From assembly GCA_965637545.1 (NCBI GenBank), contig OZ281495.1, positions 2,728,001-2,792,000 on the forward strand: a stretch of 64,000 nucleotides of DNA, given 5' to 3'. Position numbers and translations under genes: made by a program. Below are positions 289 to 58,430 of the stretch, in pieces. The notes below the pieces were generated by a model. That model saw nothing but the letters and a program-made list of their open reading frames with translations, made no database searches and was not told the DNA's origin. The stretch comes from Phallusia mammillata. Taxonomy: Eukaryota. Position 1 is the first letter of the stretch; every line of letters begins with the position of its first letter.

Positions 289-518
289 GTAAATTAATCG
301 GTCAATACATATAAATTTATTATAATAAGAAGTAACCCCGAGTAGAAGCAGATTTCCTTGCCCGAGACGCTTTGGAACTGGTAGTCAAAACAATTAAGTT
401 GAGAGATAATGTGACAATGTGATCTGTTATATTTCTTGGCGGTTCAGAAGTTACACAGTAACATAAAAAAATCTAAAGGTATTAAGTCGTTTTGTCATAT
501 CACCCATCTATATTTCAG

Positions 519-8774: not shown

Positions 8775-8974
8775 NNNNNNNNNNNNNNNNNNNNNNNNNN
8801 NNNNNNNNNNNNNNNNNNNNNNNNNNNNNNNNNNNNNNNNNNNNNNNNNNNNNNNNNNNNNNNNNNNNNNNNNNNNNNNNNNNNNNNNNNNNNNNNNNNN
8901 NNNNNNNNNNNNNNNNNNNNNNNNNNNNNNNNNNNNNNNNNNNNNNNNNNNNNNNNNNNNNNNNNNNNNNNNNN
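8775..8974. other. Scaffold gap (200 N)
   Basis: Run of exactly 200 N. Confidence 1.
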
Positions 8975-22700: not shown

Positions 22701-25138
22701 GTCAAAACTTGAGAAAGTAGCTTGGTAGTTTGTTGCTTATCCAAACGCGTTTTCAATTCTTCTTTTATTTCAGTCATTGTAGGACGTTTTGTTGGATCTT
22801 GATCCCAGCATCGCTTCATCAGTAGTTGGAGTTGCTCTGCGATTTCTTTGTCTTCACCGACCAAAGTTTGTATCCAATCCTGTATTTCCTGGCAGTCTGG
22901 TCTTTTTCCTTTCTTGATTTCCTCTAATAACTCTCTTCGCTCTTCCTGAGTCAGACGTGGATACGGAGCTTTACGATTTAGTGCCCAGTGGATGATCATT
23001 GAAAATGCGTAAACATCATGTTGCTTCCTAGGCTTCATGCTGAGGTCCTTCAGTTTTTCAGGAGCTGTGTAATAGGGAGTGAATTGAGGCCTTTCTTTCT
23101 TGGTTCGTGCCAAAGGATTCACATTTGCCGAAATACTGTAAGTTGCCAGTTCGGCCCCGCCAAAATCGATTATTTTGCAATGGAGCTCTTTAGAAAACAT
23201 AACATTTTCGGGTTTTAAGTCCTGATGAATTAAACGTTTATCAGGTAAATTGTGACAGAAAGCCATTGCTGATGCTACTTCGTATAAAATACGAACACGC
23301 AAAGCAAGGCCCAGTTCTTTTGATGTATCCTGTAGTAGCTCTTTGAGATTCCCGCCTTTGTAATATGCCATCACAATTCCTATTGCGAAAGTCCATTTGA
23401 CATAGCCAAAAACCCGAACGACATTTTCATGATCTGCTTTCTGCAAGTGTTCCATTTCTTCTTTGATTCTAAAAAGAGAGTTTTTTTTTCAGCTGCATGT
23501 TACGTTTTGTGCATGTAATAACGCAAAGCAAAGATCTCGGTAGGACAGGTGAGGTGGTATGTCCCCTCAACAAAATGATTGAAAACAATTTATCAAACGT
23601 CACACAACCCGCATTCCTCGCTTTTTAATCTTCGGTTTTTAGCAATGATTAAAAATGTCGCATCTCGCACCACACATCAGGAAATCAAGCAGGCCAACCA
23701 AGATTAGTAGTCACGATGGCTGGCGCGCTTTGCTGGTTAATTCATCTAAGATTGCGCAGTAGTTTGTCATTATCGTGTAGTCCATGGAATTAATGCCGCT
23801 GGACGAAGCTTTTGAGGTATAACTAGTTTTGTAAGTCCACACATATACCAGATACACCAGCACAATATATAAAATTAGCAAATGTTTTCAAAATTGCCAT
23901 TTTTTAAAATTTAATTTCGATTTGTTACCTCATTATCATATTTTACAAATTGTTGTGAAGTCATCAACACAAAATTAATCTTAAATAGTACGTTTCTTCC
24001 ATATTTGCGATAGATTTGCACCGCTCTATATAACAAATCGTATAACTTACGTTTTTTCAAGCCGCGCCTTTTCTTGGGTTCCACCAGATACTTCAAACAC
24101 TTTGATGGCAACTTCTTGCTTTAACCCATTGTGGTATCCGAATATAACATCCCCGAAGCCTCCTGAACCGGCCACGAATTTGTCAAGGTTACATGTGATG
24201 TCACCACAATCCAATTCCCGTAACTGTGACACAGAAAGATTATGTTTTTACCCCTGATGTCCAACGTATATTTCATTGAGGTCCAACCAAGCCATACAAC
24301 TAACTTAACCAATGTTATTCAAAACTTTGTTCAACCGGTTTGCAAACGAAAAGTTTTTGATTCAAATCCCGTTGGGCTTTAGTAATTGCTGAGTAATTTA
24401 AAACCCAGTTTTTTACATTGCAAGATTTGTTTTTGAAACAAATTCTCTGCTACAAATTTAGGTTTATCAGACAAGTCAGAGCGAGTTGAGTAAAACATAG
24501 TTATCGACTAGTTTCAGAGTGTTAAAATGGTTTATATAGAAAAAGAAAGCGGATTATGTCAGTAAGTCCTCCTAAACTTAACTCTTAGCTAAACATTATC
24601 AGTCACTAGAAAGCACAAAAGGGCCTTAGAGCTACTAACACAGGACCTTACATCACAGGCCTACTAATTTCCAGTAAAGTGCGCACTCAAAAATAATTCC
24701 GGCAGAGAGCGCACTCAAAAATCTTAAATGCACTTTGTAAAAAAAATGCTGACGGTTAGGGCTATGGGGGTTGGTCTGAGGTTTCACAATAACACTGAAA
24801 TCAGCCCAAAAACCCAGTTTATGTTAAATTCATTCATTTAACCCTACCCCAGACGCAATTGTAATTTGAATAACTGCGCTCTTTTCACCATCGATCGGTA
24901 TTTAAGAAACTTTTTGTGGTGTGAGTTTCTGTGTTAGTAGATCCTCCCAAAATAGGAAGGAACGAAAATACTTTAGGATTAAAAGAAAAATTTAAAACAA
25001 ATTTATTTGAATCCCGGTAGTCTAATTTGAAACTATACTTTTTCATACGGTGGACAAATAAAACCTGTTTAGTGTAATGAACAAACAAACAAAAGAAAAA
25101 AATTTGTAGAAGTTGCTTACCTCTTTCGGCGAAGTCAT
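10018..25138 (-). CDS. Unit 1 gene model: RIPK-like kinase - linker repeats - SH3 - linker repeats - TPR-like domain (~955 aa, 15 exons)
   Basis: Exons 25121-25138, 24051-24223, 22603-23468, 22292-22372, 21623-21748, 21032-21118, 20830-20919, 19732-19776, 18566-18669, 18032-18181, 17594-17624, 16816-16938, 16597-16686, 16033-16155, 10018-10778 sum to 2868 nt = 956 codons in one open frame with compatible phases. Confidence 0.72.
11958..12260. repeat. CCCGAA/GGCCCG-rich interspersed repeat (MITE-like)
   Basis: Clustered cccgaa/ggcccg motifs at 11970-12040 and 12190-12255. Confidence 0.35.
12337..15120. mobile_element. Decayed DNA-transposon-like material in the last intron of unit 1
   Basis: Starts near CACTAGAAAAAA; AGCC/GGCT-rich repeats at 12350-12720 and 15030-15120 (30-bp tandem pair); exon-like fragment NFCTVALYHMFYLEYP at 14199-14246. 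Far end not found. Confidence 0.3.
13270..13661. mobile_element. MULE-like MITE with ~120-bp TIRs and 8-bp TSD
   Basis: TIRs GGGTGACACTAAAACGCTGAATGGGCGGGA...; aaattttt duplicated at 13262-13269 and 13662-13669. Confidence 0.8.
16033..16155 (-). CDS. Unit 1 type-A linker exon (VPSTLNNTEERSTEP...QQP)
   Basis: tttag|TG ... G|gtatga, 123 nt, phase 1-1. Confidence 0.8.
16597..16686 (-). CDS. Unit 1 type-B linker exon (DPTRRGSKGLFTTVRKFISRLNRKSPQPPT)
   Basis: ttcag|AT ... G|gtaaac, 90 nt, phase 1-1. Confidence 0.8.
16816..16938 (-). CDS. Unit 1 type-A linker exon (VPSTSGDTEERSTEP...PQQL)
   Basis: tttag|TG ... G|gtataa, 123 nt, phase 1-1. Confidence 0.8.
17594..17624 (-). CDS. Unit 1 31-nt micro-exon (ILEIKEVKNT), phase 0 to 1
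   Basis: acccag|ATA ... ACA G|gtaagt; restores phase after the SH3 exon. Confidence 0.55.
18032..18181 (-). CDS. SH3 domain, second exon (EEEGWARGRCNGKEGVFPTNY...)
   Basis: acacag|GAG; SH3 core GW..G...G.FP.NY; ends AAG|gcaagt (GC donor) or 4 nt later at a GT. Confidence 0.85.
18566..18669 (-). CDS. SH3 domain, first exon (DVEVLRRMEVTYSYEPGNADELQLKVGDIIDVYND)
   Basis: gtcag|AT ... GAT|gtgggt; SH3 RT-loop motif Y.Y.P.N.DEL.L..GD.I. Confidence 0.88.
19368..19710. mobile_element. Truncated copy of a CCGAATATTCGG-type MITE (fuller copy at 57547-58006; mirror 3181-3523)
   Basis: Aligns by eye to 57547-57690 and 57880-57925. Confidence 0.65.
19732..19776 (-). CDS. Unit 1 short linker exon (ENRPTSSSSSPQQPT)
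   Basis: cctacag|AA ... G|gtaaac, 45 nt, phase 1-1; 3' half matches type-B exons. Confidence 0.6.
20830..20919 (-). CDS. Unit 1 type-B linker exon (DAIRNDDEKFNPSVQKLIARFNSISPQQPA)
   Basis: gttcag|AC ... G|gtaacc, 90 nt, phase 1-1. Confidence 0.82.
21032..21118 (-). CDS. Unit 1 A-related linker exon (ASAGTSQKNKQLPSYEQEETPTSSNAQQS)
   Basis: cattag|CA ... G|gtatga, 87 nt, phase 1-1. Confidence 0.65.
21623..21748 (-). CDS. Unit 1 A-related linker exon (GPSTTSAAIKK...SRKPQQL)
   Basis: tttcag|GC ... G|gtatgg, 126 nt, phase 1-1. Confidence 0.7.
22292..22372 (-). CDS. Unit 1 shortened type-A linker exon (VPFTSGGTEGRLSE...SQQ)
   Basis: tttcag|TG ... G|gtaaaa, 81 nt; the paralogous downstream donor is lost (gattta). 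Confidence 0.65.
22603..23468 (-). CDS. Unit 1 main kinase exon, RIPK-like TKL kinase
   Basis: EEMEHL (alphaC), IHQDLKPEN, IIDFG, YTAPE, DVYAFS, LMKRCW..DP.KRP; ttttag|A phase 2, G|gtaaat phase 1. Confidence 0.93.
24051..24223 (-). CDS. Unit 1 kinase N-lobe exon
   Basis: cacag|TTA; GSGGFG and VAIK; AC|gtaagt; 173 nt, as in units 2 and 4. Confidence 0.92.
25121..25138 (-). CDS. Unit 1 start exon (MTSPKE)
   Basis: ATG ACT TCG CCG AAA GAG|gtaagc, phase 0 fits the next exon; paralog MTSANE at 46657-46674. Confidence 0.7.
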
Positions 25139-25759: not shown

Positions 25760-28250
25760 GACCGCCGGTTATTAGTTGTCACCAGACCATTAAGGGTAGG
25801 GCCTGAGGTTTAAAGCAAAAAAGCGCCTCTTTGAAAACATCGATTGTGTTTGCGTATAAACGGTTTTGTTTCTTGTTTTATTGTTTTTTTTTATTTCTGT
25901 GGAAATACCATTGTTTCGACAGCTTCTACTCAAATGTGGGACAACAGGCAATACATATACATTTTATTGAGGTCCTCCCGCACCAACAAACAGAGTAACT
26001 CGTTTTTATCAATCTTAGTTGTTTAAAAATCGAATAAATTTCAAAATTGTTGTTTGAGTTCGTGTTTTAAATGTTGCCAAACATATAGGATGTGCGGCGT
26101 TTTCCATATTGTAATTCAACGTATAAGTCAAAAACTATTAACGGCAAATTTAATTGGTACTGAACCAAGGTTAAAAATAGATGTGGAGGCAAACAGAGCT
26201 TTAGTCGAGTCTCGCCAACAATAAGGCTGGTGGGTTGGGGTAGAACGCCACTAAGGCGTAACGGGTAACCAACTTTGGGTCTCAGGTATCGTCTCACAAC
26301 GATTGAAACTCGATTATTCACATGGCGCTGTTTGTATCAATCTATGTGATTCTGTTGGTTGGCCCAGACAAAAGACTTAAAACCTCAAACTAGTGAGAGG
26401 ACTATAGCTTTTTTAAAAGTATTGCCGCTCGTCACTGACTCCTTTCGTAATATACGTTTTGTACATAACAAAATCTAATGCGCAAAACACTACAAATTCA
26501 GACCTGCTCTATTTCTACTTCGTAAGAGCAGTCGCCTAAATAAAGGTTGGACCGACAACACGACTCGTATGAATGAATGCGACTTATTTACAGCAGCTGA
26601 ATAGAGGAACGGTGTTTTTTCACGTACTCGCCGTGACTGCCACGTTCTTAGTTGTCACCAGACCGTACAAGGGTAGGGGCTGATGGTAAAAAGTTTTTGC
26701 CGGTGAAAAAAACGACAAATACAAGAACAATTGTTGTTGCGTTGAAACTTGGCCTTGAGTCAAACCGAACAACTTAAACCTAGAAAGTGTGGTTAGTTAA
26801 ACTTCATGGCTGTGTTGGGCTAAGGAAGTTACTCAATAATAAGTATAAGCGTTGCAATATCCAACATACATTGGTTATAAAAGATACCAATATTATTTAT
26901 AGACGTCACCACACCAATAAACAGGAGAACACGTTTAATTAATCTTGGATGCGTTAATAATACACTAAAGCATGGGTCGGCAACCTCTGGCACGAGGTGG
27001 TTTTTCATGGCACGCCAACCGATTTGCGTGTTTATATTGAAGGAACAATTTAACCTGTTACACTGCTTGTTTATAGTTTTTATTCAGATTTACATGCACA
27101 AAACACTGCTTTTTTCTTATTATTGATATCTGCTGGCACGATCAACTATTATTTAGAGAAACGCTGGCACGCGGGGTCATTAACACACAGAAGCAACAAG
27201 TAATTGGCACGCGTCGCCTAAAAGGTTGCCTACCCCTGCACTAAAGTCCAAACTGGTCAGCTGGGTTTGTGTGGTAACTATTGGCAAACACATAACGAAA
27301 TAGTTTAAATACCAAACGCCTTAAGAATGATATTTATATCTGCTAAGCATAATCCATAGTGAGAACAGCAGCATTACTTAACTTTGCCACATTCGTTTAT
27401 CAAGCTTTGCCACGTAAGGTATCTCAAGCATACAAAGCCACGTTTCTAAAATTTTTGGGCAACGTGTAAGTCGAAAACAAAAGTCTACCGGCAGATTTAA
27501 ATGATATTGAACTAAAGGCTAAAGTTAGGCGCGGAGGCATAAATCAGCTTATAGTCAAGTCTCGTCACGTGCCTTTGCTACAATAAAGCTGATGGGTTGG
27601 GGTAGAACGTCACTGAGGGGTGACGGGTAACCAATGTAGGGTCGTCTCACAACGATCGAAACTCGACGTGACCGCCGCGTTATTAGTTGTCACCAGACCG
27701 CACAAGGGAAGGGCTGAAGACGATTGTGGTTGCGTTGAAACTTGGCCTTGTGTCTTAAACTAAACGACTTAAATTTCGAATATGTTATGGGTGAGTTGTA
27801 AAACACCATTATGACAACACTATGCTGTGCTGCTGTGAAAATACAACGTTCATTAGTAAAAAAATCATGAGTTGTTTCAAAATTTTAAAAACGCTTTTAA
27901 ACAAACATCTTATGTATTTCTTTTTTGAGCGTGTTACCAACCTTGCCACGTTCGTTTATCAGACTCTTTTTCGTAACGTATCCCAAGCATGCAAAGCAAC
28001 GTTTCTCATATTTGCAGTGTTAGCAACGTGTAAATCGTAAACAAAAGCTATCGGCATTTTTGTTCAAAACTAAAGGTTAAAAATAGATGTGGAGGCATAA
28101 AAAAGCTTTCAGTCGAGTCTTGCCACGCCACTTTGTAACAATAAAGCTGGTGGGTTGGGGTAGAACGTCACTGAGGCGTGACAGGTAACCAACATTCGGG
28201 CTAAACTATCATCACAACGATCGAAACGCAATTATTCACATGGCGCATTT
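25760..28250. repeat. Internally triplicated non-coding module upstream of unit 1
   Basis: ~170-bp block at 26167-26328, 27511-27666 and 28071-28246; ttattagttgtcaccagacc-like block near 25770, 26645 and 27680; partly homologous to 47550-48000. Confidence 0.8.
26971..27238. mobile_element. hAT-type MITE
   Basis: TIRs CATGGGTCGGCAACCT / AGGTTGCCTACCCCTG; 8-bp TSD cactaaag on both sides. Confidence 0.88.
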
Positions 28251-29246
28251 GTTTGTATGAATCTAAGTGATTCTGTGGTGCTGACTGCTGCAAACACAAC
28301 TCAACAATTGTAGATCGGTGATTTTTATACCCAAACCTTAATTAATCGTTCTGCGGAAACGCGTTCTACAGGTTATTACTTTTTTGCATATTGCTAATCT
28401 TTGTGATTGTAATTTGTAAGCTACAACTACATTTTGTTGCCAAGCAACATACCAATGAGTAAAAAAACTAAACGTTGTCGATATTTTGTGGGTTGTATTG
28501 TATTTTGTTTGCACGTACGTCAGCAAGGAAAACAAAGTATAAGATATCATAGGTAATTTGGCTCGAAAAACACTTCACACAGCTGCAAAAATCAACCAAT
28601 TGTGGAAGGAAACAAAGGTGTTTTTTGCAATTTTTTGTGTGTTTTGTGCGAATTGGGATGATAGCTTTTCCGATACGCTGGACTGGTGCTTGTGCAATTT
28701 GGGGCGTATACTCGGTATATTTCGTACAAGCGGTATCTGATGTGAGCAAAGGTCATGAGATTAGATTCACTGGGTTCACTACAAATACTTCGAACTTTTT
28801 CTGGGATATCCAACTTCTGGCTTTTCTCGTCCCAGTAAAAATACCAACCCTTCTGCTTGGTTGATGTTAATTTTTGGAAAGGGAAGTCTATTGTGTATGT
28901 AAAACTAATAAACAAATCAAACGAAAGCACCAAGCAATGCAAAAAATACAAAATCCGACACTACAATCTTTAGTCCAACTTTGTGACTTTACCCGTTCCC
29001 TCATGGGATGTTTTCACGATGCACTGAAAAGTTGCAAAATAGTAAAATAAATAAAACTATTTTTGCAGAACTACAAAATAATTAAAACGCAATCAGAAAT
29101 GCTCGGGGTATAACTTGTGATACTCGTAATTGAAACTTAAAGCTCGAATCACCCAGTCCGTTGCTTGGTGGGTGAAGACTAAAAATCCTTATAGCAATAG
29201 ATGTAAGTTCCGACAAATCACTTAGTCGTTCACCCTTTGGTTTTAA

Positions 29247-33780: not shown

Positions 33781-36700
33781 GGGCTCTTCTCTTCTCTCCC
33801 CCAATATCTCGGAGTCATCTTTAAACTCTTACTATGGGTCTTAAACACTTCTTTGACGAGTTTAGGTCGCTCCATATCCAGATAACGACGAAGCAGAACT
33901 GCCGTTTTGAAGAATTTATGGCGATGTTTTATCTAGAGGGACTACCTTTGTATGCATACAAGAAGATGTTGGTCGCTTGCCGGTGTGCAAACCGACGCCA
34001 GTCAATCTTTAAGATTACTTTCGCTGAGGAATGCACACATGAGCTCTCACAGATTCACAGGAAATTCAAAAACGGTTTCCGCTATCATGATGATACACAT
34101 ACCCATTACACTCTAATCTTGAAGAGCTTTTACCCTCCTAAGCCATTGACACGCCTCACTCTGTTCCCTGTACCGGCAGAGTTCGGCACAAAGCAATTTG
34201 CGCAGCTGAGAAGTTAGACTGGGGAATCTACTCTAAGCATACTTTTCTTACATATAAAAAAATACCGAATCAAAGATTTCTGTAATGAAGAGAAACCTGA
34301 TAAGTCTTTCTTTAACACAGAACAAATAAAACAGGAAAACTCGAGTATCAGATCCCTAAAAATAGACGACCAAATAACTACCGATGAAGATAAACTCACA
34401 CAGTAAGTCCAACACTACTATAAAAGCCTTTGGCAAACGGAAAACACGAGAAATGTATCGGCGCAAATTATTTTCTTTCCCAAATTACTACGTTTCCAGA
34501 AGAACCAATAGACTCACCAATAACAATTGAAGTTGCAAGAAAAATGCAAGCGTTAAACTCATTCCTAAAAAGCAAGATAAAACTCTAATAAAAAACTAGC
34601 GACCAATTTCCTTACTTAATGTAGATTATAAAATAATTAGTAAAACAGTAGCGAAAAGACGTTAAAATGAACTTAATAACAAAATTAGCATCGAGCAAAA
34701 ATGTGGACTAAACAAAAGCTACATCCAGGACATTCATTATAATATCCAAACCGCAATCGAATATAGTTATCAAAAACAAACCCCTTTGGCCTTAATTCAA
34801 ATTGACATAGAAAAAGCATTCGACACCGTGGATCATGATTTTGTGAACAAAATTCTGGAAGTTTTAAACGTTAACATATACACCGGAAATTGGATCAAAA
34901 TTTTACACAAAGATATCACGAGAACAGTCAATGTAAACGGAAGAAAAACAAATAAAATATCTATAAAACGAGGAGTCCGCCAAGGGTGTGGCTTATCGAT
35001 GATTCTTTACGTGACTGTATGCCAAGTGCTAATACAAGCAGTAAACAATAACCAACAAATAAACGGAATAAAAATTGGTAAAATAGAAGCGAAAATCGAA
35101 CAATATGCGGATGACTCGACATTTCTCGTTTCCAATAAACAATCCCTATTAGAAATTTTTATCATTATGAATTTGTATCATCAAGCATCTGGACAAAGAT
35201 TAATCAAAATAAAACAGAAATACTCCCAATATCCCAATTTTTACATGACGAATTAGGTATACTATACCCTGACTTCATAAAACTTACTACTTGGACTAAA
35301 ATGCAAAAGACACGCGAGAAAATTGTGTTCCCATTATACGGCATGCAAAGCATATATATATAACAACAACCTTCGCACGACGCAAACTATCCTTTATCGG
35401 TAAAATCGCGATAATCAATACACTTATTCTCCCCAAGATACTTTTTGTGGCTACAGTTGTAAACCCAACCCAAACCCATATCAAAGAAATTAACTATGAA
35501 TTTTTTTTGGTTTCCAGGAAAAATTGAGCAAATGGCCCGAAAGAAACTAATATCGCAAAAAAATAAAGGCGGGTTAAAACTCCCAGATTTGGAAACAAAA
35601 ATAAATGCGTTAAAGCTTGAAAAACTACAAGAATTTATTAATTCCTAAAATATTTGTGAAATCTGGCAGCGCTGGGCAATATATAATCTCGGCACGAAAT
35701 TAAAACAGATAAAACCCTCGCTTTTCGATAATACCACACCCAAAGCCTGGAAACCAAATAGAAGCTGGACCCAAATTTATGAAACCTATTTACTTTTAAT
35801 TGATGAAAATGAAGAATTCAATTGGAAAAAAGCCAAATTACGCCATTTTTATTATGAGCTAATAAAGAAAAAAAGAAGTCGATTGTACACCAACAACCAT
35901 CGATGATTACAGTTGGAAACGGGCAGTATTTCTCCAACAGGGAATAAGGTCCTTTTTTCAGCAACATGGAGCGACAAATAACGTTTCTAACCATACACAA
36001 AGCGTTTAAATGGGGTGATTTTGATCGCTCCAAAAATCGATTTATAATGAGGGATGGTTCAATCAAAATTAATCGATGCAAATTCTGTAAGGATAGAAAC
36101 GATAACATAGAACACCTTCTAACGAAGTGTCCTATTAGTAACTTAATCTCAAATAGCAAACTTTGCTAAAATGATTACAATTTGGAAACACCCCTCTGGC
36201 AAATTAAAATAATTGCAATTAGGCGATCTAAAATCATCAAAAAATGGCAAAAACTAGATTTGCTTAAGCATCTGCATAATACAAACTCTTTTGCAAACAA
36301 AATGGCCGCCAAAATTTTCACTACCTTCAAAACAGGAATACAAACCTTTGTTAAAAAATACGGCGACAATTATATTGAAGTGAAATTCGGTTTAGGCACG
36401 GACTACTTTTACGCAGCCACGTAAAGAACAGAACTACCGCTCCTTATTTATTACGCTTTCGCTATACATACTATTGTGTATATTGTAATACAAATCTTAT
36501 GTGTAATTGTACCATGTGTTGTCACTCTACGTTTATGAAATAATAACTTATGTCAACTGTACCTAAAACCTGTGTTTAGTAATATTTGCTGAATTATCGT
36601 GTCTATGTTTGAACACCCCCTCTCATTTACTTCCGCTTTGAAATGAAGGATAAAATGTACTGTATCGCCCTGCCTTGCACTAAGTTTTTTTTTCGTACCG

Positions 36701-37071: not shown

Positions 37072-37200
37072 TGATGTTGCCTTGACTCATTTCATAGTAA
37101 TGCAAACACCAAACCTCCCATTTACATCGCATTTCTTCTTTTATTTGTAAGTTGCGAATTTATTGGACCATGTTACGCATCAGTGCGATCACGTGATCAC
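37072..37200 (-). pseudogene. Orphan fragment of a fifth TPR exon
   Basis: DHVIALMRNMVQ*IRNLQIKEEMRCKWEVWCLHYYEMSQ aligns to residues ~59-97 of the TPR ORFs; in-frame stop. Confidence 0.85.
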
Positions 37201-46674: not shown

Positions 46675-49384
46675 TTTTGTTTTGTTCAGATAGGCAAGTC
46701 CTGACTGTTTTCACTACACAAATAAACACATGTACATTGTTGAGATTAGCCCTTGAAGCATTCATTCAGATCAGATATTATAACACATTCAGAGGTGTAA
46801 GCAACTGTTAGCTGATTACTTCATCGAGTTTGCGCGCGAGTGAATGTTTTACTGCTCTAAAAATCCTTCCTACCTCTCATCCATGTCCTACCTCTCATCT
46901 ACGCTGTTGGCTTAAACCTGACGTTTAAAATGCAACACGACAGTGGTTTTAAAATGTGATGCACGAGACCCATCAAGGGCTTAATTAAGCAATGCAGTTT
47001 AAGGCAAAAGCTTTTCATAGCACTTTAACGACAAGATGTATAGAACGAAAACACGGTACTGCCACAAATTCATTATGGCTCAGCATTTAGTAAAGTACAC
47101 AAAGAAAGAAAAAACATTATATGGTGGTTGAGCGCTTAGGCTATTCCGCTAGGCGATGCACCAGAGTTATAATTTGTCACGTTGTGCTTGGTATATTCAG
47201 CGAGAAAAATGTCTGTGTTGTCAACTTGATTACAACAGCGTGGAATGGTAAACTGAACAATTATTCGGACAATTCTAACGCGGTTTCTTTTCTTTGGCTT
47301 TTCTGCCGAAAATTTGCTGTCGTTGAGATGCTGTATTTAAACCCATTAGACTCGCCGGGCTTGTCAAGCACACAACCTTATGTAGCACTATGCTCAAGTA
47401 ACTGTTCTGTGTCAGATATAAATATTTCACTGTCATCGTCACTTTCATCGCCTCCACCCATTCATTGAACTTTTTATACATTCGTTTGTTTGGTCGCTAC
47501 CACTGACCCACACGAAAGACTAAAAACGTCAAGCCAGTGAGAAAACAAGCTATTTTAAAAGTGTTATCGCTCGTCACCAATTCCTTTCGTAATGTACGTT
47601 TCGGGAATAATACCATTTATTTCGCAAAACACAATTTTAGGCCTACTCTGTGTGTACTGCGCAAGTGCAGTCGCCTAAATAAAGGTTGGTCCGTCAACAC
47701 GACTGCGATTTATTTACAGCAGCTGAAAAGAGGAACCGTGTTTTTCACAAGCTCGCCGAGACCACCGCCATCAGACCGTAAGAAAGAAGGGGATGAAGGT
47801 AAAACGTTTTTGCCGGTGAAAAAAAACTACAAACTTGCTCGAAAACAAGAATTGTTGTTGCGTTAAAACTTGGTCTTGTGTCAAACTTAACAACTTGAGC
47901 AAGGAGAGTGTGGTTTGTAAAACTTCAAGGCTGTATGTTGGTCTAGTATAGATCTTCAATAAAAAGAATAAGCGTTGCAATATCCAACATTGGTTATATA
48001 AAAGACAAATGTTTTTTGTATAAACGGCAGCCTAACAATAAACACTACAACATGTTAAATCAACTTTGGGTGCGTTATTTACAGAATAAAGTCTAAACTT
48101 GTCATTTGCGTGTTTGTGGAAAATATTGCCAAACACACAATTGCATCCTAATATCACACACAAAATACGAATAGGTTCGAGTTGCGAAACGCGTTGAAAC
48201 ATGCAAAATATATTTCCAATCTTAAGTTTGTTTATTTCAGGTTTACTGTCTGGTTTCGCGCTTGACTGATTTTGGGAGCTCAAACTGGTATAACTGAGCG
48301 AGTGTTTCTGCGTATTAACGTCAAGCATCTTCAACCTGCGCAAACGGTTTGTGTTGTCGCTATGTGTGGGTTTCTGATTCAAAAATATTTAGTTATTATC
48401 CAAAAATAAATGATGGTACTCTATTTGCCTCAAACTGATTTACATATCACATTGTTATGATTGCATGTTGTGCTTTTCGTGTTTGAATATTACAAGTAGT
48501 TAAGTGCATTTAAAATGTAGCTACCCAGAACAAGGACTACATGCTGTAAAACACGAAAGTAAGAAAAAAATGCCACCAATCTATACACCATCAACATCCT
48601 AAACAACCCCTGTATGATTACCAAGATGCAAAATGATTACTAACAAAATGTCATTAGATCCCTACAAACCTTATTCGAATCTAAAACAGGTAACAATATA
48701 TTAATGGTCATCGACAGTTGTTATTATAGCTATAAATGACGTCGAGCATGTTATTTAATAAACTTAGGTATGCACCGAAAATCGCAGTGTAAACGGAAGG
48801 GGTTACAAGCTAAGGTTGGGTTCGACGTCACTAAGCATAGTGTAAACGGGCTTTAGGTCGGATTTACCACGATTTGTACTCTTTGTGTTGAGCGCAAAGC
48901 TGTTCCAACGCGCTTGACTGGTGCTTGTGTAAATAATGTGGCGTACATTTGGTATATTTCGCACAAGCGGTATCCGATGTAAGCAAAAATCATGATATTA
49001 CATTTACTGGGTTGGCTACAAATATTTTACCGAGCCCTTTATAGAATCAGGCCAACGTTCTAGGTTTTCTGGTACTAGTAAAAATATTAGCCCTACTACT
49101 TTATTTATGTTATTTTGTGGAAAGGGAAGGCTATTGTGTATTTAAACCATAACGGAAACAATGCAAAAAATACAAAAATCCGTCCCTGGCCTTCAGTGAA
49201 ACTACGTGACTTACCCGTTCCCTCATGGGATGTTTGCACTGAAAATTTTAAAAAAAAACGAAAGAAATATATTTACTTTTGCAGAACCACAAAATCAAAA
49301 AATCAATCAAAAAACATGTACAAAATGTACTCAAAAAGAGCAGCAGACGATCAGCGTCAGTGTAACGTTTTATTTTTGAAAAAC

Positions 49385-49424: not shown

Positions 49425-50770
49425 GTCTAAAAAGAAAAGAACGATAAAAACACATAAAAGCTAAAACGGTAAAATACTAAGCAAGTAACAGCCGCAAATT
49501 CAGACCAAAGCGATGAAAAACAATGGAGAAGGTCTGCAAATAACACCAAAGCTGACTGACTGCTAAAATGGGGGGTGGCAATAAAGGGGCCGGTAGCAAA
49601 CGAAAAAACTAACACATGTAAGAAGGTGATGACGTCATTAAGTGATAAGGGGTCGTGCGTACAAGGTGTCAGAAAGCTGATTATTTTACCTGTGGCAAAA
49701 TCATTGGTTGTATGTTTATGGTCGCCTTTAGGTCGTTCAACCATTTGTCCTCACAAATATCTAACCGGCTCATAGGCGGCTCTTCAACAAATATTACCGA
49801 AAACCAACTTGATATGTCCGGTTTGTTTGCTCTTGCTGTCTGTTACGTCCCCTGTTCGCCACGTTGATCTGTGTGCGTTCCATCTTGTGCTCAAACGGTT
49901 TTTCGTTTGCCCCACGTATTGTTCTTTGCATGTGGTGCAGGTGGCCACGTATATGCCATAATTTTTGCATGTCAGTTGTTGCCTTAGAGGAATAGAGTGG
50001 TTGGAAGGGGTGGTGACATAGGAAACGGAAGGAACCATAGCTTTGAACCCCTTTCTACAACCACACAATGCGCATTTGCCGCATGGTCGTGAATATCCAC
50101 CAGCCTGTTGACTCGACATATCCAGTACGTGCTTTTTTGATAGTATTGCGCCCAGTGTTTTGGGACGTTTGAACGTAATGCAAGCCCCGGGTTTCAGCGC
50201 TTTTTCTTTGCCTGTCAGGTGAAGGATGCGTGGAAAATTTGTAGCCCAGACAACTCTTTTGTGTGGCTCCTGCGGCATAGTATTAGGTCCAAACCGTTGT
50301 TTCCAGGTGGAAGCTAGTGTGATTATGTCCGAAGTCATTTTCTTAGGAAAGCAAGAAAGTATACATTTTGGCTGCAACCTCTTAAGGCTGTGGATGAAGT
50401 CGGCATCATTTTCATTCAGGCGGCGCATGCGTACTGCTTCCGAAAAAACAATTGATTTGAATAGGCAAGGAGGATGGTGCGAAAATCCATTTAAAAAACG
50501 ACGGGATACAGCCGTAGGTTTAACGTAATCTTTAGTTGTAAAACCTGTTGCGGTGGTGTCGGACGTAACATGGAGAACGTCGAGGAACTCCAATTCTTTT
50601 CCAGGTGCAGCTGTGCATATCTTTCGAAAGGTTAGGGACAGGCCAAAACTGGCAAAAGTTTTGCTATGTAATGGTTTTACAATTCTCATGCTTGTGGTTC
50701 TCAACCAGGCGAGGGGATTCCCCACTAGAGAGGAATTTTGTAATTTGTAGAGGGGGAATTTGTGTTACAA
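49385..50770 (-). mobile_element. Internally deleted Penelope-like retroelement (RT thumb + GIY-YIG endonuclease)
   Basis: LEFLDV, YVKPT, SHHP, CGKCALC linker, GIYVATC...QYVGQT; C-terminus VIFVEEPP...EDKWL...INIQPMILPQVK* (stop 49681-49683) in a shifted frame; RT catalytic core absent. Confidence 0.9.
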
Positions 50771-51319
50771 TATCAATCTCTTACTGGTAGTTCGTGCTAT
50801 GTGTTATTGCTGCAATTATCATGCATGAGCTAAAAATAATAATTCACACTGAATATGTAGTACAAAGAGGTACACACAGGAATATTAAAGGCTATAGACT
50901 AGTATAGAAGTTATAATCGAGAGAATTTCTGTTCTAAGAATTACATTGAAATGTTAATGTAAACGATATTTTAGCAAGCTGAATTTGAAGGGGGGAACTA
51001 TAGATTTGAATAACGACCAAACTAAAATTGGGATAAAATTTTCCACAAATATGAGGATAAAGTAGGATAAAATTTTCCACAAAAATCACTTAGAACCATT
51101 TGTATAGCATTAAATCTACATTTTTGCATGCATGGGACAGTTGTTCTATAAATCTCTTGTTCCCCTATTGGTGTAAATATTAAATGCAGGATCCATGATG
51201 GAAATTCTTGACAAATGTGAAAATATACGAGCTTCTAATGTGAAAAAATCAAACATGAAATTATTTACACACATAAATGTGAATTTGTTTCACAAAAGCT
51301 TTGTTACGAACCAAAACTT

Positions 51320-52104
51320 TCACTGTTTTTGCAGCAAATTTGTAATTTTGTCCAACTTTGCTTTGTTGGATTTTAAATACCTTTCACCTTTTTCAATTCT
51401 TTCTTCTTTATCTTCCTCGGTTAAATCTCTCACTGATCTATAAACTTCGATTGCTTTTGTGTAATTTGCGTCTGCTTCTTCGAGTCGTGAAGTTTCCTCG
51501 CAAACAAAACCAAGATAGTTCAACAAGGTACCATAGATTCGATACTTCGAACATTCATTGCCAAATTTTGTTTCCATAAGTTCAAGTCCACGTTTTATTG
51601 TTGTTTCGCTCGATGTCCAATCCCTGATGTAATATTGACTCCAGGCAATACAACCCAAACAGCGAACCTCCCATTCGCATCGAATTTTTTGGTTAATTAG
51701 AAGATCGCTTATTTGCCGAGTCATGTCGTGCATCAGTGGAATCACGTGATTGCGCACAATTTTTTTGTTTTTTGACTTAAAAGTTGAATCAGATTTTTCC
51801 ATCAGAAGTTCTATTGTATCTCGAATTTCAAATGCACGGACAGTTACACTTCTCGCTACAGTAAGGTGAGGATTTTTCTTCGCATAGAAATCTGCGGCAA
51901 TGCGAAAAAACAAAATGGCTTTCAAATATTTGCCGTCATATCGAAGTTTTTTAGCTTTTCTGATTAAGTTATCCGCGGTGAGCCCTGGTAGTCCTTCGAT
52001 TGATTTTAAAAGTTGTTTTTTAATCTTTTCTGCTTTTCCAGCGTTTCCAGATATTAATAACTCAAAATAACTGTGTATGCGTTGGTTGAAGTCGACATTT
52101 CCAT
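51320..52104 (-). CDS. Unit 3 terminal TPR-like exon (most divergent copy)
   Basis: tttctcag|AT, phase 1; open for 261 codons to the stop. Confidence 0.85.
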
Positions 52105-52249
52105 CTGAGAAAAATGAGAGTGCTGTTTTAACTGCATTGCAGGTGTCAAGAAAATACTAATACAAATATTCTGTTTACAAGGTCAAGCACTTAAAAGTCA
52201 GTAGACGAGGTAATACTTTTTATACCGCGTCGCTTTGTGATTAGTTTAC

Positions 52250-52339
52250 CTGTGGGTTGCTGTGGAGATGTGCTACTGAAACTGGCAATTAGTTTTAATG
52301 ATGCGATGGAGCGTACCTCGTCATCGTGTTCGATTGGAT
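52250..52339 (-). CDS. Unit 3 type-B linker exon
   Basis: tttag|AT ... G|gtaaac, 90 nt. Confidence 0.75.
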
Positions 52340-52467
52340 CTAAACAAATATTAATTTTGATCAAATGTTTCGTTCAAAAATGTTGTTTAAAAACACTGAT
52401 TTTTTAGCGTTGCCAGTTATATATTTTAAACGATAACTACTTTCCAACGTTTCAATACATCTTATAC

Positions 52468-52578
52468 CAGGTTGCTGTTGTTGTGTTTTGAAGGTGGGAA
52501 ATTCCTCTCGTGTCTTTACGAGCTTACGTGCGCCTTTTGTTGGCTTAGTGGATTGTTTCTCACCTGATGTGGAGGGCA
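52468..52578 (-). CDS. Unit 3 type-A linker exon
   Basis: tttag|TG ... G|gtataa, 111 nt. Confidence 0.75.
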
Positions 52579-53073
52579 CTAAAAAAATTGTTGGTTCACA
52601 AGACAATAAGTTTGATAAAAGTCAATGCACTGTTAATTTTTCTTGTATAATGACAAAATGCATTCAGCTAAACTGTCCCGTTACCGAGTGAAATGGTTTT
52701 AGGTTTCGTTGGAAAAATGTTGACTTTCCACCAGCAGTGTACGATTTGCAGTTAAGCAACGCGTGGTGTTAAATGTTATTTCGCCAAACCAAGTACTTAG
52801 AATTTTCAGCTTAAGAGTAAAATTAGTTTCCTGATACTATTAAGTCTATTAGGCAAATCCGCTGCAAGTATTGAATTGATTGACAGAGACAAGGCGTTGT
52901 TATGCCTACTTACAACATACTTATGCTTTATTAATTTTGAACAATTTAAGAACCGTTGGACTTCCATTAAAGTATAGTTGATAACCGAAGCTTTGGGTTT
53001 GCAAGGTCAAACGCTTTAAAGTTAACAGACGAATTATTACTTTTCGCAACGTGCTGCTTTGTAATTGGTTTAT

Positions 53074-53160
53074 CTGCAGGTTGCTGTGGTGATGTACTGT
53101 CGAAACGAGCGATAAACTGTTGTAGTGATGTGATGGAACGCTTCTTGGTGACGATTGGAT
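53074..53160 (-). pseudogene. Type-B exon with destroyed donor (GT>AT)
   Basis: DPIVTKKRSITSLQQFIARFDSTSPQQPA G|ataaac instead of gtaaac. Confidence 0.7.
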
Positions 53161-53449
53161 CTAAACATAAATGACACTAAATTAATTACTTTACCCAAAA
53201 ATCTGAAAATCTTAATGTAGCTTTAAGCTTTCCCGATAACTACGAATTCAAAGTTACAAATTTATCTTATAACAGGTTGCGGTCCAATAACAAACTTTCC
53301 GTGACACGATTATAACAATGATTTTAAATTTGCTTTAAAAAAATGCTTTGTAGCTCCAAAGCCTGTGATAGAACATAATATCGTAATTTATTTTCAACTT
53401 CTAATAAATAACATAAATTTGTGATTTAATTGGCAAAAAATAAACTTAC

Positions 53450-53533
53450 CAGCAGGTTGCAGTGGTGATGTACTCCTGGAATGGTCAATTTCCTCTCGTG
53501 GGGGGCGTTTTTCGCCACCTTTACTGGTTGAAT
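53450..53533 (-). CDS. Unit 3 type-B' linker exon
   Basis: tttag|AT ... G|gtaagt, 84 nt. Confidence 0.75.
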
Positions 53534-53962
53534 CTAAATAAAGATAATTTCGAAATTACTTTACTTTTAAAACACATGTACAAAACAACTACAAATTTTA
53601 ACCTACTAATGTATTTCATATCCGAGTACCGTGTTTTACTGGTGGTGGGAGTTATCACTCTTATGTGGCATCTAATGGTTTACTTGATTGATTTATGGTG
53701 CCACCAATTGTGGAGGGCTTTCAAATACACATGCTATTTGGATGCACAAACAAAGCCTGCTTGGCTGGAATTTTTATCGGCATCCGAGCTTATTTACATG
53801 CTTTGGAAATGACAAATCAGTTTAAGTAACTGTGAGTTAAATCTGTGTAATTAAGTATAATGTTGCCTAGCATAAACATCTGAGTGCGGCGTTAATATAT
53901 CGTTCTTAAAAGAATTTGTCTGTATAGACAACGTTACATTAAGTTACACAGAAACAAAATAC

Positions 53963-54226
53963 CTTTAGGCAATGAAGTGACACTTTCACCTTGCTTACTG
54001 CTCACAGGGAAACTAGAGGTTGCTTGTAACAACTCTATTCGCAAATTGATCAAATGAAAAATCTGCTTTCCATTATTGGTGTAAACTTGGCGTTTAGTCG
54101 GGGCCGAGGAACTAATGGGGCTCAGGCTCTGGTTTAAAAGTGAGGGTTTCGGGGGCAAGGAAGGTTTGGTTTTTGTTTTTGGTTGGCTTTGATTATTAGA
54201 TGTTTGATTGGATCTATGAAGATCTC
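53963..54226 (-). CDS. Unit 3 proline-rich linker exon (..KTKPSLPPKPSLL..)
   Basis: tttttcag|GA ... G|gtattt, 264 nt, open, phase 1-1. Confidence 0.6.
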
Positions 54227-54912
54227 CTGAAAAACATGAAAAACTCAGTCATCCGTGCAAGCAGCAACACAACTCATGCAGATGTGCCAGGTACCGTTCT
54301 GCACATAGGGTCAGTCGATGGTTTCGTTTTATCCCTAGCTGACTCTGAGGGTTTTAACGCGGGTTTTGTTGCCCGTCGCGTAGGCTGATTGCACTAGAAT
54401 TATTTTCAGTTATCATAACCTAATTCTTAAAAATCTATTTTTAATTGCCACTACCCAAATGTTTCATCGTTACGAATTAAAATTGTTGAGGTGTTAGTTG
54501 CTGGCGTTGCCGCTAATACTGAACAAACCGCTAATACTGAACAAAAAAATTCCACTATTTAACATACTTGTAATTATACTGGTGTAGTGCAAGACAAAAA
54601 TACTGGTTGTTTTTGAAAACTTGGTGCAGCTAACATTGACTTCTTATCAAACTTGCAGAGCACGGTTGCTGTTTTAACCTTATTTTCTAATTTACAACAA
54701 CGATTTTAATTTTGTTTTACAATATACTTTACAGATCCGCAACGTGTGATGAGAGGTAATAATTCAGTCACAATTTCCAATATAAAGCGGACTAACTTAT
54801 ATTTGTCATTTAATTGTTTGAATGTTTGTTTTATTTCTTCCTCAGCGGGCGAGCAACGTCTGAATGCGTTATGATCTAAAAAAAGTCCGCTGTTGCTGTG
54901 TGGCTAGTTTAC

Positions 54913-55005
54913 CTGTGGTTTGCTGTGGTGATTTGCTGTTGAAACGGGCGGTTAATTGTTGCAGTGATGCGGTAAAGCGTTTCTCCGCATCATGTGTAAT
55001 GGGAT
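54913..55005 (-). CDS. Unit 3 type-B linker exon (…SLQQLTARFNSKSPQQTT)
   Basis: tttag|AT ... G|gtaaac, 93 nt. Confidence 0.75.
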
Positions 55006-55351
55006 CTAAACAAATTTTAATTTTGGCATAATAATTACAAAAACAGTCCGTCTTCTGCCTCAGTTTTCCTAAAACCATTTTAAGTTAGTTTAAGTTCGTA
55101 ATGTTGTTGCAGTTTCTTAGGAAAAATAGTAAGTTTATTTTTGTGCTGTTTTAGCGGCAGAGTGGCGAAAGACCCTAAGGTCACCTTATCAGCCACCCTC
55201 GATTTCAATACAGATACGTTTAATAAATTTAACCTTTATTAGGACAACTGTATGTTCTTACAGTTCAATTGATCCTGTATACAAGTGCTGTAATCTATTT
55301 CTACTTAAAGTTAATCTATTTACAAGAAAACATTTTTTTTTGTTATTTTAC

Positions 55352-55575
55352 CTTGAAATCTCTTGGTTCTGGGTGGCGATCTGTTCATAGTAACCGGTTA
55401 ATTTTCGCTTACTTGCGGTTAATCAAATCTATTTGAGTTAAATTCGTCAAAGATTGAAATTAGCTTAGTGGTCCTGCTTAAACTCGATCTGGTATTTTTA
55501 CTTGTTCTGGTCTTCAATTAAACATCCACGAAACCTCCTAAACCGGCCACGAATTTGAGGTTACAATGATGTCAA
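55352..55575 (-). pseudogene. Unit 3 kinase remnant: G-loop fused to C-terminal tail
   Basis: DI.CNLKFVAGLGGFVDV* followed within ~50 nt by TTKLIS...F D*PQVSEN*...RFQ G|gtaaaa; catalytic lobes deleted; terminal donor retained. Confidence 0.85.
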
Positions 55576-57546
55576 GTTAATCAAATAACTTTGCAACTAA
55601 AACGACTAAACTCGTAAGGTTTCTCTTTTACTTGTTTCGTTGTAGCCATCGTAACATCATTAAAGTTTTACACAAAATTCAGCCTGACAACCTGTTGCTG
55701 TGAAAACAGCTGATATCAGCGGGAATTAAACAAATATTAGCGCTCCTTCAAATTAACAACAGAAGCCTAATTTTCATTGAGCTGCTACAACTTTACGCTA
55801 CACTGATCACACAAATCGGCTGGCGAGTCGAGTTCTTGTTGGGGTTACCTGATACGGTCACGTGAGAAGTGACGTCATCAGTTGATATTCAACGGCTGAG
55901 CAGCGAAAGTCACGCTCTTAGCACAGAGGGTTAGCTTAAACTTCAAGGTACGGTAAACACAATGACTAACTTGAAAGGCCCATTTTCTATATATTGCTAA
56001 CTTGTATATTCTACTTCTTATTTAATCAGTATACCTCATACACCATTTGCTATACTCATATCCGATATAACTCATCTGTTACTTAAATTCATTAAGACTC
56101 TTATCTTTATTCGGCACTGACAATTTATAAAACCAGGTTCTAAGGAAACTAAAACGATCAAAACAAAACTATTCAATACCGAGAATGACTATAACTTATT
56201 TAGTTTATTTTTTCGTGAGAAATTATCATTACCACACAGAGGGTATTTGCTAACCTTGTGTCCCGTTGCCTATTGGTTTTGTTTGAAGTGTCAGTTGGCG
56301 CTTAACAAATATTGACTTTCCATCAAACTAATGTGCGTAAGATTCCAGATAATAACCGGTGCAAGTACAGTTAAGCGAAATCCTAGGCAACATGCAAAAA
56401 CGCCTAATCTTTTACACAAGAAATGCCATCGCTAAGCCAAATGCACTTTTCCTGTTATAGGTAGCCTATTTAAAGAACAAAAGGAGGAATAAACAAAACA
56501 AATCACCAAATTTACAACAAAAAACGCATGTTATACTGGGTTTTGTATTGCAATATTACATCAGTAACTTACACATTTAGCTTTAACAAAATCAGGTTCA
56601 ATATTTCATCTACAGCTTGGGGATATTGTACGACAACAAAACGTGAGGAAATGAGTGAACTCGGTAAACATTTTGTTTCTCTCGCTACGATTATCGTGTC
56701 TCGCATCCTACAGCGAACCGGACAGATTGCTTTCTTTCTTTTACTCTCGTCTTATGCTACGTATTCGTACGTTGTGTTCATCTATTTTCATGTATCTCGA
56801 ACAAACACCTCGCTACAATGTTGTTAGCCCTATTACCGTCAGCACTTTCGTACGCTTTATTAGTTCGCATCGATTGCCTGTTATAAAGTAGGCTGTAAAA
56901 ATGCTTGTTCTGTGCACTGTAAAATAGACATAAATTAAGCTAACCTAATGTTCAAACAATTAGCCTTTTTAGGATTTGTTAACAAACAAAAATTTACTCA
57001 TACAACTGGCAACTGGGAAATCAATGGTTGTTGTTAGCAACACTTCCGGGGACGTGGGAACATTTGGTCAGAGAGTTTTTTCTGCTTGGGTGCCTAAATA
57101 TTTACTTGGATATTTTTTAATAGAGTCGAAAGTTTTCTGTTTCGTGCCATGAATCGCTTTATCAATATTTAAAAGTATATTACTTGGTTTATTTAATGTA
57201 AAATGGCATTTAGTGTTTATTACAGAATCTTTCCCGTAAATAGTAGGCATCTTCTGTCGACGATCACGGATTAAATAGTGAATCATCTGTAAGAATAATT
57301 GATGAAGCAACAGCGCTTTCTAATCAAAATTAGTCAACAAATGTTATTTAACGATATATATTTCACCCGTAAGGGCATCGCAACCCCATATGGCGACTTG
57401 CTTTGCAATCAGACATTTAGCTGTTGTCCGCCAGATGTCAGCCCGGGAACACTTTAGTGGTTAATGTATTGTTTGCTGGAATGTTCCAATGTTGTTTGTC
57501 ATGTGTTTCATTTCGCATGACACAGTGATCAGTACCTTTTGATTTG

Positions 57547-58006
57547 AGATGTACCGAACATTCGGTTTGCCGGATGTATTCTGCCGAATCGGCCATTTTT
57601 GCAAAGATTCAGTTTCGGCCGAATAATTCGTTGCGATTGGGCCGAAACCGAATCGCGAACTTACATTTAAATCGCTGAACGTGTCTTTTCTGCTCAGTAA
57701 GGTACCACGCAATCTTTCAAACTACACCATAACGAAAACTTTTCTAGTTTTTAACACATTTTCGTTTTTCCTAGTGTAGACAAAAAATCAGTAATTCTTT
57801 GCCAGGTTAGTAATCATGCTTGAGGCAATTTTACACCCAACAGAAGTAAAATGATGAAAAAATGCAACCATTTTGCACTAATTGCCTGGTAGATGAACTT
57901 ATGTTTTCATGACAAACGCGTACTGACGACTGCGCGTGACGTCATAAATGATTAGCCGAATATTCGGTTTCGGACGAATCGAAATTTTAGCCGATTCGGT
58001 ATATCA
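57547..58006. mobile_element. CCGAATATTCGG-type MITE
   Basis: Imperfect inverted ends AGATGTACCGAA / TTCGGTATATC with internal ccgaat/attcgg palindromes; second copy at 19368. Confidence 0.65.
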
Positions 58007-58430
58007 CCACTTTTGGTCCACAGCGATAAAAACAAATTGAAACACTTGGAATCATTTAAGCCGAAATTGAGCGACAGATAGAAAGGGTTATGCAAAAACT
58101 TCAGGTTGGGTTTAATCATACCTGCTGTGATGTAAAAACATGTTTTGCGCTTCCTCATTATATGTGATCTGTGTGCCGTAAACATACTTACAAAACTTAT
58201 ATTCTCAAGCTGCTATATTCTATAAAGTAAAATATCTCCCCAAAACATTTTTCATCAATTTTTTGAAAAGTAAGTATAATTTTTACATTAGTACAAAAAA
58301 TCGTCACTAATATAAAGCAATTTTGCACAAAAAAGCATAATATTAAACATAAAATTAATTTACGGTATCAATTTGTTTCGCAATAATTTTATCACAGACA
58401 AACACTTTAGTTGTTTTGTAGCAACGTTAA

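Follow-up and report, generated by a model that had tools for sequence, protein, structure and literature searches.

A tandem duplicate of a RIPK-like kinase gene in Phallusia mammillata has lost its kinase and appears to retain its linker and TPR-like exons under selection

Tandem duplicates that consist of an interaction domain only, and that act as non-enzymatic decoys on the pathway of their parent, have been described beside caspase-1 (COP/CARD16, INCA/CARD17 and ICEBERG/CARD18) and beside ASC (POP1) (PMC3775265). Here, we analyze a stretch of 64,000 nucleotides (nt) of the ascidian Phallusia mammillata (assembly GCA_965637545.1, contig OZ281495.1, positions 2,728,001 to 2,792,000 of the forward strand; further called the window), which holds four tandem units of one gene type, all on the minus strand. 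One of these, unit 3, has lost its kinase and is a domain-only derivative of an enzyme gene, a known pattern, inside an uncharacterised family. It shares with the CARD-only proteins and POP1 an origin by duplication and a place beside the parent and, as in other domain-only decoy paralogs, its interaction domain shows the mark of selection after loss of the enzyme. The likeness is one of mode and not of family, since the former carry CARD/PYD death folds and unit 3 a TPR-like solenoid. Moreover, the CARD-only proteins have been shown to be expressed and inhibitory, whereas unit 3 is a candidate for such a role.

The closest systems in composition are the ascidian RIPK-like kinase-linker-TPR genes, i.e., units 1, 2 and 4 of the window and the Phallusia mammillata protein A0A6F9DJG.. 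(P0153), which have the same exon plan as unit 3, with a linker of phase-1 mini-exons and a single terminal TPR exon. In full, a unit comprises a small exon A encoding the G-loop of the kinase, an exon B of ~870 nt encoding the remaining kinase, a number of mini-exons and one terminal exon for a helical domain of ~260 amino acids (aa). Repeat finding recovers the terminal exon in four copies (at ~10.0, 38.6, 51.3 and 58.4 kb) and the kinase exon in only three (at 22.6, 41.7 and 62.8 kb), both being clear repeat families beyond chance. The kinase exons match the Pfam profile Pkinase with E = 1e-36 to 6e-38, and RIPK1 ranks first among solved structures for a paralog kinase exon (E = 1.5e-30), followed by RIPK4 and RIPK2. 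This likeness to the human RIPK1, RIPK2 and RIPK4 belongs to the paralogs, unit 3 having no kinase domain, and the window family carries a TPR-like tail where the human proteins have a death domain, CARD or RHIM. Among public proteins, the nearest derive from transcripts of Phallusia mammillata, with 62-74% identity to the tails in the window. No literature was found on a family that combines a RIPK-like kinase with a TPR-like tail, and the family appears to be unstudied; an immune role is suggested by analogy only, based on the RIPK-like kinase and the tandem expansion. Unit 3 lies in the same cluster and on the same strand as units 1, 2 and 4, shares 58-60% identity with them in the TPR exon and has the common linker motif DP...ARF.S.SPQQP. 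It is a tandem duplicate within a same-strand array, with a residue of its own kinase still present. Unlike its kinase-bearing relatives, it lacks the kinase, evolves at about twice their protein rate, extends eight codons further at the C-terminus and has no RNA seen so far. The two ends of unit 3 on which the comparison rests are:

55352..55588, minus strand: kinase remnant, 237 nt, delimited by alignment to units 1, 2 and 4; ~92 nt of exon A (G-loop) fused to ~141 nt from exon B (post-kinase tail)
51319..52104, minus strand: terminal TPR exon (TPR3), 783 nt (52104-51322) plus stop codon (51321-51319), encoding a TPR-like helical domain of ~260 aa

The remnant consists of two pieces. Positions 55588 to ~55497 are homologous to the start of exon A in the paralogs (its first ~100 nt), and positions ~55492 to 55352 to the end of their exon B (its last ~155 nt), i.e., the post-kinase tail. 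The deleted portion of ~845 nt corresponds to ~63831-62985 in unit 4 and comprises the end of exon A, a 71-nt intron and ~705 nt of exon B, taking out the VAIK lysine, the catalytic loop, DFG and APE. The junction lies at ~55500-55493, in an A-rich patch that is similar to both sides. What was not deleted has decayed: the G-loop, GSGGFGDV in the paralogs, reads GLGGFVDV followed by a stop, and the conserved tail motif RVPLHYFS is destroyed. Compared to the paralogs, the remnant carries seven insertions or deletions (indels; -6, -1, -3, -1, -6, -2 and -4), four of which shift the frame, and its ancestral frame contains four stops in 77 codons. An earlier note on this DNA had described the kinase as a wreck of ~220 nt with frameshift and stops, which is confirmed at a length of 237 nt; a G-loop stump and a scrambled tail are all that unit 3 has in place of a RIPK-like kinase domain. 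Its splice signals are retained, with an acceptor AG at 55590-55589 and a donor GT at 55351-55350.

The decay of the remnant can be set against the state of the exons behind it on one and the same branch. An ancestor of units 1, 2 and 4 was derived by majority rule, and the synonymous and non-synonymous differences to unit 3 were counted in the ancestral frame as proportions per site (pS and pN). At the DNA level the unit-3 branch is unrooted; it was rooted at the protein level with P0004, a receptor-type protein of Phallusia mammillata. The counts are as follows:

TPR exon, 247 codons: pS 0.290, pN 0.176, pN/pS 0.61 (bootstrap 95% interval 0.44-0.86)
Kinase remnant, 77 codons: pS 0.289, pN 0.307, pN/pS 1.06
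Remnant-equivalent segments in the intact paralogs: pN/pS 0.26

The kinase remnant has evolved neutrally. Its pN/pS of 1.06 differs from the 0.26 that the intact paralogs show for these segments (Fisher p = 0.0018), and the neutral value is found in both parts, at 1.10 in exon A and 0.97 in the tail without its last 16 codons. The TPR exon, on the contrary, is constrained: pN of the remnant exceeds that of the TPR exon by Fisher's test (p = 0.0003) and by bootstrap (P = 0.0004; 0.017 if the last 16 remnant codons, which are very diverged, are omitted), and the ratio of non-synonymous to synonymous rates (dN/dS) on the TPR3 branch, an estimate that the earlier note had proposed, is 0.55 and below 1 at p = 0.006, i.e., non-neutral. 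This ratio does not differ from that on the branches of the intact paralogs (Fisher p = 0.90). The lesions are distributed in the same way. All seven indels fall in the 264 columns of the remnant and none in the 744 positions of the TPR exon, for which we calculate P ~8e-5 at a uniform rate, and stops occur in 4 of 77 remnant codons vs 0 of 261 TPR codons. As pS is equal in the remnant and the TPR exon, both parts probably share one history.

How long the open frame could have drifted was simulated under neutrality, starting from the present open frame of 428 codons. Counting stops alone, this frame survives with P = 0.06 at 0.05 substitutions per site and with P = 0.003 at 0.12; if indels are added at the rate of the remnant, survival drops to P = 0.03 at 0.03 and P = 0.004 at 0.05. 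The remnant has accumulated a neutral divergence of ~0.3-0.4, against the ~0.03-0.05 that the 428-codon frame tolerates. These sequence comparisons suggest that the kinase part has been unconstrained for roughly the whole unit-3 branch, and that the linker and TPR frame can have been neutral for at most about 1/10 to 1/6 of the neutral divergence of the remnant. Because pN of the remnant has reached the synonymous level and the frame tolerates only limited drift, the loss of the kinase is old, and the data favour a linker and TPR part that selection has retained during most, if not all, of the period that followed. Recent pseudogenisation, which the earlier note had put forward as a possibility, therefore does not hold as the whole story, given a remnant at pN/pS 1.06 over the whole branch vs a TPR exon at dN/dS 0.55 with neither indel nor stop. 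Judged as an unprocessed pseudogene, unit 3 has its lesions confined to the kinase remnant, linker and TPR exons without a stop or frameshift, and neutral evolution in the remnant only.

At the end of the remnant, between it and the TPR exon, and directly behind the latter, the following features were delineated:

55352..55388, minus strand: candidate new start, ATG plus 12 codons (MNRSPPRTKRFQ) plus one base, in phase 1 at the kept donor
54913..55005, minus strand: linker exon E1, 93 nt, phase 1-1, DP...ARF.S.SPQQ module, AG/GT intact; similar to linker exons of units 1, 2 and 4
53963..54226, minus strand: E2, possibly a further exon, 264 nt without a stop in phase 1 from AG to GT; unsupported
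53450..53533, minus strand: linker exon E3, 84 nt, phase 1-1, AG/GT intact; 79-86% identity to linker exons of units 2 and 4
53074..53160, minus strand: linker exon E4, 87 nt, phase 1-1; donor AT (53073-53072) instead of GT
52468..52578, minus strand: linker exon E5, 111 nt, phase 1-1, S/P/Q-rich type, AG/GT intact
52250..52339, minus strand: linker exon E6, 90 nt, phase 1-1, DP...SPQQP module, AG/GT intact
51235..51318, minus strand: proximal 3' untranslated stretch, alignable with its paralog counterparts, with a common TGTAAATA...ATGTTT block

E1, E3, E4, E5 and E6 are linker exons of the family type, i.e., open, 84-111 nt long, in multiples of three and of phase 1-1. The five linker exons and the TPR exon, which the earlier note had taken to be intact, are indeed all free of stops, with the correction that E4 has lost its donor. 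Overall, 13 of the 14 splice dinucleotides of unit 3 are intact. For E4, a cryptic in-frame GT lies 33 nt further on, after 53041, and the exon is symmetric and can be skipped. No homologue of E2 (54226-53963) was found in the window, among the family proteins or in Pfam, and these introns contain other open runs of 70-86 codons; for these reasons E2 is graded as no more than possible. The spliced frame encodes 428 aa (399 aa without E4, 516 aa with E2), which replaces the product of ~487 aa proposed earlier. A further candidate linker exon upstream of the remnant (56282-56375) was rejected, as it is non-coding on the minus strand and matches a short repeat inside the introns of unit 1 (BLAST).

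The ATG at 55388 is absent from the paralogs, which have CTT (Leu) at this position, and runs in frame into the donor GT in phase 1 (55351-55350), both as noted earlier. It has an A at -3, and the sole upstream ATG in the remnant exon, at 55525, opens a reading frame of only three codons. Translation would plausibly start here. The donor that follows, GTAAAATA, does not differ from its counterparts in units 2 and 4, despite 48-50% divergence in the preceding 50 nt, and the chance that it stayed identical at neutral divergence is, by our own arithmetic, ~0.06. The kept donor, the new in-frame ATG with its A at -3 and the single three-codon upstream frame are signs of a transcript of unit 3's own. 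As a separate observation, the last 50 nt of the remnant (55352-55401, minus strand) differ by 48-50% from all three paralogs vs ~30% elsewhere in the remnant. It is here that the new ATG now lies, together with a basic peptide. The excess may be due to small indels that offset one another, or the new use may have driven the change.

A palindromic TGACGTCA is separated by 6 nt from a CACGTG on the minus strand at 55877-55847, at a distance of ~260-290 nt upstream from the remnant exon, and CAG|GTAACC follows; a second TGACGTCAC is present near 57940. The group at 55877-55847 possibly represents promoter elements or a non-coding first exon of unit 3. About half of the Ciona genes receive a spliced leader by trans-splicing, and in this way the kept acceptor alone could be enough to make the 5' end of unit 3. 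Upstream of units 2 and 1, two pairs of non-coding blocks are conserved (47504-48091 / 26360-26970 and 48898-49313 / 28663-29099; 74% by BLAST, 85% over aligned columns; no long open reading frame (ORF)). These blocks could belong to promoters or first exons, or could be a repeat common to both regions.

The terminal exon encodes the part on which selection is seen. TPR3, which is ~25% diverged from its paralogs, aligns to the tails of units 1, 2 and 4 over 248 codons without an indel, and its ancestral stop has been lost, which adds eight codons at the C-terminus. An AlphaFold2 model based on an alignment of 28 relatives has 11 helices in a right-handed solenoid (predicted local distance difference test, pLDDT, 94.6; predicted template modelling score, pTM, 0.90). 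In Foldseek searches, it matches best to the TPR domains of KLC1/2 and LGN/Pins (E = 7e-5 to 1e-3, template modelling (TM) score 0.5-0.6), followed by sNASP and 14-3-3. Pfam TPR profiles stay below the cut-off, the best being TPR_12 with 24.2 bits vs 30.1, and cover one repeat only (residues 194-226). The domain, as modelled, is TPR-like in fold only: the predicted fold is that of the kinesin light chain and LGN/Pins TPR domains with their peptide-binding grooves, but sequence identity to these is 12-18%. A feature search of the Atlas returned only generic TPR clusters.

An exhaustive search of representative sequences yields 323 relatives of the domain, 56 of them at E <= 1e-10, and the domain tree, (P0004,(u3,(u1,u4,(u2,P0001)))), places unit 3 inside the family clade. 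The domain occurs in several contexts. It follows a kinase in P0005 and P0153, both fragments that start in the kinase C-lobe, and a Sushi-like ectodomain with one membrane helix in P0004 and P0152 of Phallusia mammillata. P0003 of Ciona intestinalis (1277 aa) has four copies of it, relatives in Styela clava (721-811 aa) have no Pfam kinase, and in Ciona RefSeq models of 307, 354 and 420 aa it stands alone behind a short N-terminal stretch. The tail domain is thus a shuffled module in ascidians. The latter three models (Ciona intestinalis XP_078491044.1, XP_002125319 and XP_078483285.1, respectively) resemble unit 3 in a short non-catalytic N-terminus followed by one helical domain of ~240 aa, with 30-33% identity to TPR3 over nearly the whole length, yet in the domain tree they fall into a distant clade, and the locus of the 307-aa model has neither a kinase neighbour nor a kinase remnant. 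Because these models exist, and because the locus of the 307-aa model is free of a kinase, a kinase-less product is an ordinary architecture for this domain. What is peculiar to unit 3 is that this architecture was reached secondarily, via a deletion, within a kinase cluster. In a metagenome-derived relative (P0002), a stretch CGHCALCG is present at the end, after the TPR domain; a similar cysteine cluster in the window is described below.

We tentatively favour the reading that unit 3 is a gene of its own, which encodes a kinase-less linker and TPR protein serving as competitor or adaptor. In this scenario, a tandem duplicate of a RIPK-like kinase-linker-TPR gene lost its kinase early through the internal deletion of ~845 nt, after which purifying selection would have acted on a kinase-less coding unit of linker modules and a TPR-like peptide-docking domain. 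Unit 3 would be transcribed on its own, with the decayed remnant as 5' leader exon, and translation from ATG 55388 would yield a protein of ~400-430 aa. This non-catalytic product may bind the same set of partners as the TPR tails of the neighbours, or a shifted one, and could act as a decoy (competitor) or as an adaptor for the kinase-bearing units. If so, the TPR-like tail and linker would have a function of their own that does not need a kinase in cis, and the tail would be the part to use as bait for ligands or partners of the family. More generally, such clusters could yield non-catalytic regulators, as the primate caspase-1 locus did with the CARD-only proteins. Comparing a decayed remnant with the exons retained on the same branch also offers a clean way to tell an old domain loss with kept function from a fresh pseudogene.

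Several results weigh against this reading, and most of them would suit a unit 3 that is dead today, the rest of it having died only very recently, or its apparent constraint stemming from, e.g., gene conversion, with no useful transcript left. We consider this somewhat unlikely, and it is the alternative that survives best. To begin with, TPR3 has evolved at 2-2.5 times the protein rate of its sisters, with 48-49 unique changes vs 18-25 (Tajima tests, p = 0.0002-0.007; controls among the sister TPR exons are balanced), and it replaces residues that are conserved in distant relatives (R127H, H152G, E155A, G162R, N198Y and A226V). It still has the core motifs of the family, matching 50 of 76 consensus columns of the distant family, compared to 56 for the sisters and 51 for the expressed P0004. 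The rise in rate fits either a functional shift after loss of the kinase or a partial relaxation of constraint, and under a strict synonymous clock the lineage-specific dN/dS of TPR3 could, by our own estimate, be near 0.75. To these are added the lost ancestral stop of the TPR exon and the donor of E4, GT turned to AT, which is the one broken among nine such donors in the window (repeat family D9). For the blocks conserved before units 1 and 2, a search upstream of unit 3 gives no counterpart, even with words of 7 nt. Finally, the cluster also holds retroelement remnants and a TPR relic that is truly dead.

The same holds for the databases. No database protein more than 62% identical to unit 3 was found by word search with 144-458 aa, by the full representative search or by a word search seeded with P0004, none of which yielded a matching protein. 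Two sequencing runs of the same study contain the stretch nearly whole (shares of 0.97 and 0.96); they are probably DNA and possibly the source of the assembly itself. Twelve runs guessed to be RNA contain next to no sequence words of it. Four RNA-like runs from four studies were compared with positions 51000-56600 at 90% likeness. No unit-3 transcript was found in these four, i.e., no record that is 99% alike and no joint that fits a unit-3 intron; they yield only patches of 33-65 nt (90-97% identity, 1-7 mismatches) on the most conserved bits of the TPR exon and linker. Other members of the family are well represented in them. Within 52560-53124, contigs of 907 and 1147 nt from two of the RNA-like runs (X3 and X6) match linker modules with 90-95% identity; they are paralog-derived, because beyond the matched patch they are unlike unit 3. 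On the conserved tail patch 51549-51615, short contigs reach word depths of 100-400. The silence on unit 3 despite the presence of paralogs speaks for a dead gene. Nevertheless, it is weak evidence, because the contig sets are small and their kind and tissue are not on record.

Against a dead unit 3 stand, first of all, the open frame without indels, which caps any neutral period at ~0.03-0.05 substitutions per site, and a dN/dS of 0.55 that is the same as in the intact paralogs. With equal pS in the remnant and the TPR exon, and even divergence, neither a separate origin nor a conversion tract is needed. Gene conversion from units 1, 2 or 4 was rejected, as the divergence is even along the TPR exon and the longest identical run is 23-25 nt; conversion from a family member elsewhere in the genome could still mimic constraint.

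A second alternative accepts the selection and assigns it to another gene. Transcripts of unit 4 would read through their own TPR exon and splice a phase-1 donor to a linker acceptor of unit 3, by which unit 3 becomes an alternative 3' cassette and a kinase-4/TPR-3 isoform is the object of selection. The exon phases would permit this: every linker exon in units 3 and 4 has symmetric phases (1-1) and the kinase exon ends in phase 1, so any join is in frame. The unit-4 stop is only 2.8 kb away, upstream of unit 3 on the same strand, unit 3 has no recognisable first exon of its own, and the constraint data fit a cassette as well as an own gene. That the same TPR domain is found behind a kinase, behind a Sushi and transmembrane receptor or behind nothing in ascidians shows it to be evolutionarily mobile. 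Yet the RNA-like runs contain no joint or loose end toward unit 4, read-through of the terminal exon and 3' end signals of unit 4 would be required, and the kept donor after the remnant and the new in-frame ATG would be left without a role. Nor is such a cassette appended to units 1 and 2; only a dead relic of 39 codons follows unit 2. Taken together, we regard the cassette as unlikely. Of what the earlier note had offered, namely a decoy, a sensor-only gene or a unit-4 cassette, a kinase-less unit under selection stands in either form, and neither a unit-3 transcript nor a database protein has come forward to back it. That the tandem units are not independent genes at all, with unit 3 as a kinase-free cassette kept solely for cross-unit splicing into combinatorial kinase/TPR isoforms, loosely like the variable-exon clusters of protocadherins or Dscam, is very improbable.

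The remainder of the window, which is AT-rich eukaryotic DNA with a G+C content of 37%, contains several other elements. The relic mentioned above lies downstream of unit 2 at 37082-37198 (minus strand) and is a fragment of 39 codons of a TPR-tail exon, with 83% identity to unit 1, an in-frame stop and no flanking exons; it is an example of a truly dead copy in this cluster. A reverse-transcriptase fragment (RVT_1, E = 9e-16), from an element of the long interspersed nuclear element (LINE) type, is located between units 1 and 2 (34786-35256, plus strand). At 49784-50725 (minus strand), ~600 nt downstream of the unit-3 stop, an ORF of 313 aa has a CxxC...CxxC cluster and, behind it, a GIY-YIG nuclease motif at the C-terminus (Pfam E = 6e-5), and looks like the remnant of a Penelope-like retroelement. 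Rfam gave no match on 49-59 kb. Between units 4 and 3, the stretch 57540-58010 (minus strand) contains many inverted CCGAAT/ATTCGG motifs and looks like a small foldback element or one of the miniature inverted-repeat transposable element (MITE) type. At the start of the window, positions 1-8774 repeat 14117-22890 in reverse complement (x paired with 22891-x) and end exactly at a gap of 200 N (8775-8974). The two copies are 100% identical except for one base near 1201-1600, and the first repeats the linker and part of the kinase exon of unit 1 in opposite orientation. This duplication looks like a fold-back of the assembly rather than biology.

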